This document shows positions 10,823-12,082 of a stretch of DNA of 64,000 nucleotides, one piece after another. The stretch's first letter is position 1, and each line of letters starts with the position of its first letter. A model generated the notes under the pieces. It was not told the origin of the DNA. It saw only the letters and a program-made list of their open reading frames with translations, and ran no database searches. Origin of the DNA: Octopus sinensis (taxonomy: Eukaryota). Made by a program: the position numbers and the translations under genes. Location: positions 326,022-390,021 of the forward strand of contig NW_021831752.1 in NCBI RefSeq assembly GCF_006345805.1. Reading direction: 5' to 3'.

Positions 10823-12082
10823 ATGGTTTTATACACAATTACTAATTGTAGACCCAAACCTTGTGGAGAAACACTCCCCTTCGATGTCTCTCCACGTCAT
10901 TCAATTCCCGAGATGTAGTCCTAATTCCTAACCTTAGATGACAGTACGCGAAGCATTAAACTCTGCCATCGACGAAGAATTAAGCAGAGACCAGAACGTG
11001 TTCGTTTTGGGGGAGGAAGTAGCTCTCTATAACGGGGCCTACAAGGCATTCTCCATGCCTAAGTAAAATAGATCACCAAAGGACTGTACGACAAGCACGG
11101 ACAACCCCGAATGTTGGATACTCCAATAACTGAGGCATAAAATCATGACTAACCAATAGATGGGGTTCACTGGACTCGCCGTGGGTGCCGCCTTGGTTGT
11201 TTGAATGTGGGTTATACTTAGAGAGGACTTCGACCGATCTGTGAGTTCATGACATTCAACTTTGCCCTACAAGCAATAGATCAAGTACGAAAACAACATT
11301 ACTCGAATAGATCATCAACTCGGCCGCAAAAGGGGCATATATGTCTGCAGGCAAAATGAAGTGTCCTATTGTATTCCGGGGACCTAATGGGTCTCCTGGA
11401 GCTGTGGGAGCTCAGCACTCCCAATGCTTCGCTGCTTGGTATATGAGTGTCCCCGGACTTGTTGTGCTCTCCCCATATGACAGTGAAGATGCCAGGGGTC
11501 TTCTAAAGGCAGCTGTTCGAAGTCCCGACCCAGTCATATTCCTCGAGACTGAGGCTCTTTATTCCAAATCGTTTCCGGTATCCGAAGAGGCGCTCTCGGA
11601 TGACTTCACTTTGCCCATTGGAAAGGCCAAGATTGTCCGACAAGGCAATTCGGTGACGATTGTGAGTTTGGAGAGAGGAGTTGATGTTGCGTTGGAAGCA
11701 GCCAATGAATTGAAGGACAAGTTTGGGGTGGAGTGCGAGGTTGGACTGGTATTTCATTATTCGAGGTTATTAATCTGCGCTCATTGAGGCCGCTGGACAT
11801 GGACACTGTCAAAGAGTCGGTAATGAAAACTAACCATCTCATCACTGTCGAAAATGGATGGCACACTTGTGGTGTCGGTTCAGAAATATCATCGGCAATT
11901 GCAGAGAGTTGGGATTATATTTTTTTATATAAGGTTCTGTGTTTTACTCTCTGGATGCCCCAATACTGAGAGTAAGTGGGGCAGACGTCCCAACTCCCTA
12001 TGCCTTTAATCTCGAATCACTCGCTTTTCCACAATCAACAAATGTGGTCGATGCGGTTAAAACTGTCCTTTCGGTTTCCTGA
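10823..12082 (+). CDS. PDHB: Pyruvate dehydrogenase E1 beta subunit, 9 exons
   Basis: [49 protein letters not shown]. Introns 10826-10851, 10915-10937, 11046-11071 (GC-AG), 11135-11159 (GC-AG), 11196-11221, 11285-11310, 11740-11765, 11908-11933, all 23-26 nt; Arg/Ser-rich mitochondrial presequence. Confidence 0.97.

Follow-up and report, generated by a model that had tools for sequence, protein, structure and literature searches.

Two putative GC-AG introns of 26 and 25 nucleotides in a PDHB gene, and the frequency of GC donors in a genome with ultra-short introns

Introduction

Can two segments of only 26 and 25 nucleotides (nt), which interrupt the conserved reading frame of a pyruvate dehydrogenase E1 beta (PDHB) gene and begin with GC rather than GT, be spliceosomal introns, and if they can, do they say anything about how 5′ splice sites are recognised in the shortest introns of animals? 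Introns of the GC-AG class make up about 1% or less of the introns of most animals, fungi and plants, and in animals typically less than 1% (PMC7072748). Raised use of GC-AG introns in a lineage is already known, since in Globodera rostochiensis and G. pallida about 3.5% of the splice sites are non-canonical and most of these are GC/AG (PMC4901422). Ultra-short dicyemid introns with reduced signals have likewise been published: the 5′ splice site logo of Dicyema japonicum is reduced to 'GTa' (PMC13644364), and the introns of other dicyemids are about 26-27 nt long (PMC6543705, PMC2222250). Among animals, such short introns are known only in dicyemids and in myxobolid myxozoans, and a 2026 study of ultra-short introns leaves their recognition and mode of splicing open (PMC13644364). 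Our literature search found no paper combining 'dicyemid' and 'GC-AG'.

Materials and Methods

The material is a 64-kb stretch of DNA, referred to as the window. Genes were predicted with a codon-usage Viterbi gene finder in which introns of 18-60 nt are modelled explicitly, and the output was curated with Pfam and by listing alternatives. For the PDHB introns, the alternatives comprised all combinations of a GT or GC donor with an AG acceptor, within ±40-45 nt, in which the flanks on both sides stay open. As a control on donor choice, each of the other 15 dinucleotides was allowed in turn as the alternative donor. Raw counts of frame-joining junctions per donor dinucleotide were dropped as a measure, being swamped by overlapping open frames. 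The genomic PDHB loci of the gastropods Elysia chlorotica (L001) and Lymnaea stagnalis (L002) served as references; their exons were mapped exactly, and the three proteins were aligned together with their intron positions. Protein comparisons were made against a collection of 5.8 billion proteins.

Results

The PDHB gene model extends on the plus strand from the start codon to the stop codon, positions 10802-12082, and consists of nine exons separated by eight introns of 23-26 nt. When six introns are removed in silico between the ATG at 10938 and the TGA ending at 12082, an open reading frame of 990 nt is obtained, which encodes 329 amino acids. Two Pfam domains, Transket_pyr (6.5e-41) and Transketolase_C (6.9e-37), are detected in this product far above threshold, and the product is about 66% identical to animal PDHB over the full length, with no frameshift or stop; the alignments include PDHB of insects, molluscs and other eukaryotes, and the spliced protein itself is not present in the 5.8-billion-protein collection. 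Two further introns lie upstream of the ATG at 10938, and therefore the gene spans 10802-12082 with eight introns and its full spliced product has 358 amino acids, including a predicted presequence. The added N-terminal extension of 29 residues abounds in Arg, Ser and Thr and resembles a mitochondrial presequence.

The model is least certain at the putative first exon (10802-10825, MYVNAVKM), which has an in-frame ATG and is followed by a GT-AG intron of 26 nt (GTTTTATACACAATTACTAATTGTAG, 10826-10851). This intron links the ATG to the frame that is open from 10852, and it is situated in the non-conserved presequence. Exon 2 (10852-10914) is a phase-0 open frame of 21 amino acids with the Arg/Ser/Thr-rich, presequence-like composition. 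The phase-0 GT-AG intron of 23 nt that follows (10915-10937) coincides in position and phase with introns in both Elysia and Lymnaea PDHB (alignment column 37), and therefore the alignment to the gastropods supports an intron just upstream of 10938. Exon 3 (10938-11045, MTVREALN...YNGAYK), exon 4 (11072-11134, 21 amino acids) and exon 5 (11160-11195, 12 amino acids) are defined by the spliced reading frame and by the protein alignment, and the two GC-AG segments separate them. Four GT-AG introns of 26 nt complete the gene. The first of them (11196-11221, phase 0) is placed by the gastropod intron position in column 106 and by protein spacing; an alternative of 23 nt (11199-11221), which would add one residue, fits both less well. 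The others are located at 11285-11310 (phase 0, AIDQ/IINS), at 11740-11765 (phase 0, conserved position in column 270) and at 11908-11933 (phase 1, conserved position in column 317).

The first GC-AG segment (11046-11071, 26 nt, phase 0) forms the junction TACAAG/GCATTCTCCATGCCTAAGTAAAATAG/ATCACC, so that the donor reads AAG/GCATTC and the segment ends in CCTAAGTAAAATAG. The second (11135-11159, 25 nt, phase 0) forms the junction ACTGAG/GCATAAAATCATGACTAACCAATAG/ATGGGG, with GAG/GCATAA at its donor and GACTAACCAATAG at its end. The C of the GC donor is found in the assembly at positions 11047 and 11136, respectively. Neither length is a multiple of three, and both are like those of the GT introns of the window. 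If the first segment were retained, translation would run through GCA TTC TCC ATG CCT AAG into an in-frame TAA; in the second, TAA is already the second codon, after GCA. Enumeration of the alternatives leaves little choice at either site. For the first segment, GT donors allow introns of 53 and 68 nt only, and with either of them the conserved GEEV..Y.GAYK block is lost. At the second site, no option but the GC-AG intron of 25 nt connects the proper frame upstream (..RMLDTPITE) with the proper one downstream. The initial annotation had named the gene PDHB and had stated that GAYK/ITKG and PITE/MGF can be joined only by removing 26 and 25 nt, that both segments contain in-frame stops and that neither offers a usable GT. 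All of this holds: the identification is borne out by the spliced reading frame, both domains and the similarity to animal PDHB; a TAA lies in frame in each segment; exact removal is the only way to keep both conserved blocks; and no GT alternative preserves them.

Because the upstream exon and the intron both end in AG, the boundaries of either segment can formally be slid by 1-2 nt, giving GG..TA or AG..AT ends, and three placements thus yield one and the same mRNA. It could be argued on this ground that excision is shifted by 1-2 nt, or even that it is not spliceosomal at all and reflects, for example, DNA elimination. We regard this as the least probable of the explanations considered. GC..AG is the only near-canonical placement of both introns and the only one that fits a known splice class, as neither GG..TA nor AG..AT matches any. 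An internal eliminated sequence of the ciliate kind was rejected because the repeated dinucleotide at the boundaries is AG and not TA, so that the TA repeats that bound such elements are missing. The U12-type class has the donor consensus (A/G)TATCCTT and the branch consensus TCCTTAAC; it was rejected as well, since the PDHB donors are GCATTC and GCATAA and ATATCC or GTATCC is absent from both introns.

The comparison with gastropods also speaks against non-spliceosomal excision, as the two segments occupy positions orthologous to spliceosomal introns of molluscs. Six of the eight introns in the PDHB gene of the window share both alignment column and phase with gastropod introns, and the two GC-AG introns are among the six. 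In column 73 (phase 0), aag/GC of the window (11046-11071) stands opposite aag/GTAACT and aag/GTAGAA of the gastropods; in column 94 (phase 0), gag/GC (11135-11159) stands opposite gag/GTTTGT and gag/GTAATT. The codons in front of the GC donors, AAG for Lys and GAG for Glu, are conserved in the molluscs. Since position and phase coincide with those of gastropod GT-AG introns, sequence comparison identifies both as ancient introns kept from the common ancestor with molluscs; by the same comparison, introns once hundreds of bases long have shrunk to about 25, with C taking the place of T at position +2. Beside these six positions, the intron at 11285-11310 is not found in the two gastropods, and gastropod introns in columns 201 and 238 are missing here; therefore the gene shows intron loss and also gain or slide.

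Taken together, each segment interrupts the frame, its exact removal restores a conserved protein, its ends are GC and AG, and its position and phase are homologous to those of GT-AG introns elsewhere. From the genomic sequence, both can be assigned with good confidence to genuine U2-type GC-AG spliceosomal introns that have undergone a T-to-C change at +2.

Two more GC-AG introns were found in the window. The third (26998-27022, plus strand, 25 nt, phase 0, GAG/GCTGGG...TTTTAACCCCCAG) belongs to a leucine-rich repeat (LRR) gene at 26735-29233. No GT option joins the frames there, and the junction, which preserves the LRR-like repeat '..IKAIPPEIL..', is required whichever donor dinucleotide is allowed; the placement of this intron is based on reading frame and repeat pattern. 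The fourth (46751-46775, minus strand, 25 nt, phase 1, TTG/GCACGT...GTTACAATTTAG) interrupts a gene for a ZIP metal transporter (about 46500-47438), in which its removal restores the HEIGD motif. The Pfam Zip domain scores 68.8 bits with this intron and 59.4 bits with the sole GT alternative, an intron of 19 nt. The ZIP gene itself (46500-47438, minus strand) was missed entirely by the codon-usage model, owing to a coding sequence far richer in AT than that of the other host genes, and the 3′ end of its gene model is provisional.

Several other GC calls were rejected during curation. In RRP4, the call at 43084-43112 gave way to a GT intron of 26 nt (43084-43109), which produces PMYMH/GHGT with the spacing of the human protein; in the LRR gene, the call at 27949-27973 was replaced by a GT intron of 25 nt (27964-27988) that yields a clean LRR; and in a VPS51-like gene, a GT intron of 26 nt (30362-30387) fits better than the call at 30347-30369. 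GC calls within transposable-element or antisense reading frames were discarded as artefacts.

The curated census of the window comprises 83 introns, 79 of them GT-AG and four GC-AG, all between 22 and 29 nt long with a mode of 25. GC donors thus account for 4.8% (Clopper-Pearson 95% confidence interval 1.3-11.9%), which agrees with the earlier claims that the window holds two GC-AG introns besides those of PDHB and that their rate is, approximately, several percent. In the donor control, host genes gained three introns when GC was allowed and none or one with any of the other 15 dinucleotides; the control introns include none in PDHB, and most of them fall at the junction near 27000.

Two other explanations of the GC donors were considered. 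According to the first, the true donors are GT, and C stands at +2 through an error of sequencing or assembly or because the assembly carries the minor allele where the site is heterozygous. GC differs from GT by a single base, and heterozygosity in D. japonicum is reported as 1.24% (PMC6736024); the idea is nevertheless improbable, given that four independent T-to-C errors at donor position +2 among 83 introns would be very unlikely at any normal rate of error or polymorphism, that the PDHB reading frame is flawless elsewhere, and that two disabled donors would turn the haplotype into a null allele, in which no other decay is seen. According to the second, this copy of PDHB is non-functional or decaying: two donors have been inactivated, the segments are retained and the transcript is degraded. 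In most animals, two changed donors in a single gene would indeed be a classic sign of lost function. We consider this less probable still, because the spliced frame of 358 codons is intact at about 66% identity to animal PDHB with both domains strong, because the other six introns are intact, and because GC donors also occur in two other conserved genes. Genuine GC-AG introns therefore remain the favoured explanation.

The strong compensating consensus AG/GCAAGT, as found in mammals, is typical of the class and not strictly required of its members, and the GC donors of the window do not conform to it. They read ATTC, ATAA, TGGG and ACGT at +3 to +6, where the consensus has AAGT, and keep only the AG at -2/-1 and the A at +3. 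The description of the PDHB donors as non-consensus in the initial annotation is thus accurate, as they are far from AG/GCAAGT at +4 to +6. Measured against CAG/GTRAGT outside the GT itself, the four GC donors match at 3, 3, 3 and 4 of seven positions, and the 79 GT donors match at 2.65 of seven on average. The GC donors do not approach the U1 consensus more closely than do the GT donors of the window, which are themselves degenerate: of the 79, 39 have A at +3, 37 have G at -1 and 19 have AG at -2/-1, in agreement with the 'GTa' logo of D. japonicum (PMC13644364). G occupies -1 in all four GC donors and AG occupies -2/-1 in three of the four, a pattern with a probability of about 5-6% by chance. 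This could hint at residual compensation, but in PDHB the same bases also belong to the conserved Lys and Glu codons. At the other end of the intron, three of the four GC introns have a motif resembling a branch site (CTAAG, CTAAC or TTAAC) at a distance of 7-9 nt from the 3′ end, a weak indication given that such a motif is seen in only 33 of the 83 introns overall; in the PDHB intron 11135-11159 it is CTAAC, 7 nt from the 3′ end. Within the 64-kb window no Rfam family was detected, U1 and U6 included, and no tRNA.

A third explanation accepts the introns and challenges only their enrichment. It holds that real GC-AG introns have clustered here by chance, that their rate across the genome is the ordinary one of about 1% or less, and that nothing about 5′ site recognition is unusual beyond the published picture. 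On the one hand, the sample is small (83 introns, with a lower confidence bound of 1.3%), the window drew attention through these very introns, and two of the four lie in one gene. On the other hand, four or more GC introns among 83 would turn up with a probability of 0.0098 if the true rate were 1% and of 0.0008 if it were 0.5%, the four are spread over three unrelated genes, and the strong compensating consensus typical of donors where GC-AG introns are rare is missing from theirs. A chance cluster is in our opinion rather unlikely, and it deserves much more weight than error or decay. The enrichment of GC-AG introns is plausible, as judged from 83 introns of one window, and a rate of several percent may hold genome-wide.

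Discussion

The character of the window gives some indication of the organism in which these introns reside. The window has a GC content of about 36% and uses the standard genetic code, and about half of it consists of transposon-derived reading frames (Tc1/mariner, LINE-type reverse transcriptases and integrases). Its animal-type genes include those for polo kinase, a proteasome beta subunit, RRP4, enoyl-CoA hydratase, RNase P p30, a Tudor protein, a COMM-domain protein, VPS51, the ZIP transporter and the LRR protein, all of which are split by introns of 22-29 nt. The genome of D. japonicum is reported to have 36.7% GC and 49% repeats (PMC6736024), and so resembles the window both in base composition and in its abundance of transposable elements. 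Because of the GC content of about 36%, the load of transposable elements, the introns of 22-29 nt and the animal-type genes, we tentatively infer that the genome is that of a dicyemid such as D. japonicum; an unannotated myxobolid, in which introns are likewise ultra-short, is the alternative. Exact look-ups of two contiguous reading frames of the window gave no match. An origin in T. kitauei was rejected, as the proteins of that species should be in NCBI and the PDHB comparison would then have returned a nearly identical sequence.

The introns can be compared with several known systems. With the GC-AG class, the four introns share the GC 5′ end, the AG 3′ end and the interruption of conserved coding sequence, along with, for the PDHB pair, positions homologous to GT-AG introns in other species; unlike typical members they show no compensation at +4 to +6, are only 25-26 nt long and reach an apparent frequency of about 5% in the window. 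With the ultra-short introns of dicyemids (D. japonicum, Dicyema sp. and D. acuticephalum; PMC6736024, PMC6543705, PMC2222250, PMC13644364), the introns of the window share the length of 22-29 nt with a mode of 25, a 5′ signal reduced to GT(a), and positions conserved with other animals. Globodera, also a parasitic animal lineage, offers the nearest parallel for GC donors at a level of several percent. Its introns, however, are not ultra-short, and its enrichment is backed by RNA-seq and by conservation between species, whereas that of the window amounts to four introns in 83.

Ciliates, whose tiny introns (20-35 nt in Paramecium and others) are of similar length, form a further point of comparison. 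[quoted passage not shown] In our census 18 introns have such a length, and all ten of those with an unambiguous phase carry an in-frame stop if retained, for example 18280-18303 (minus strand), 28556-28579 (plus strand) and 45891-45914 (minus strand), although the sample is small. The likeness ends there: unlike ciliates, the window has the standard code, metazoan-type genes and intron positions shared with molluscs, and the segments are not bounded by TA.

Most likely, the PDHB GC-AG introns are removed by the same machinery as the GT-AG introns next to them. The 5′ splice site here would carry nearly no information beyond G at +1, T or C at +2 and a preference for A at +3, and intron length appears to be held to 22-29 nt. 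Weak information at the 5′ site together with so tight a length argues for recognition by intron definition, in which both ends of the intron would probably be paired across a fixed short distance, more than by extended base pairing with U1. A C at +2 would then cost little, being only mildly deleterious, and GC donors could drift to a few percent of the introns. This mode of recognition, efficient splicing in RNA and the cause put forward in the initial annotation, relaxed U1 pairing or length-based recognition, all have the status of proposals. T at +2 is clearly still under some selection, because the rate of GC is far below any neutral expectation. Carried further, the argument would be that the spliceosome of the dicyemid type has largely given up extended pairing between U1 and the 5′ splice site, that introns are set by a fixed distance from G at +1 to the branch site and AG, and that, with +2 only weakly selected, about one intron in twenty (5%) is GC-AG, a level 5-10 times that usual in animals, with no compensating consensus of the usual kind. 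We offer this extended version tentatively, as a possibility to which we would give slightly more weight than to a chance cluster, and not as the expected outcome.

These introns also have a practical side. In a gene-finder run that favoured GT, the start of PDHB was placed at an internal ATG and 100 residues were lost. Gene predictors restricted to GT-AG will truncate or break genes of this kind, and therefore annotations of animal genomes with ultra-short introns may systematically miss genes with GC donors. If the rate of several percent is true of the whole genome, it provides a quantitative handle on the relaxation of the 5′ splice site in the shortest animal introns; if the rate is not raised, what remains in PDHB is an ordinary pair of GC-AG introns. 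For the present, the data hint that GC starts are tolerated more often in an animal genome with tiny introns than in most animals.

Other features of the window

Several repetitive and mobile sequences were observed alongside the genes. An intact Tc1/mariner-type transposase frame of 330 amino acids is present at 1863-2855 (minus strand), its closest relatives in the 5.8-billion-protein collection being 46-48% identical, and it could be part of a lineage-specific element with recent activity. LINE-like reverse-transcriptase frames are located at 21290-22906 (minus), 40619-41362 (plus) and 43440-45333 (minus), and one such frame borders the proteasome beta-subunit gene (45398-46219) on its 3′ side. 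A 42-bp tandem repeat forms two arrays, at 34017-34419 (9.7 copies) and 34976-35279 (7.3 copies), which flank a short open reading frame at about 34490-34944 and may represent the terminal structure of a mobile element. At 53779-54306 a unit of 262 bp is tandemly duplicated with 100% identity, which gives rise to two identical short reading frames. Finally, a 51/113-bp tandem array of CCCTAA-like units, resembling telomere repeats, occupies 56638-56862 and is thus internal to the window.
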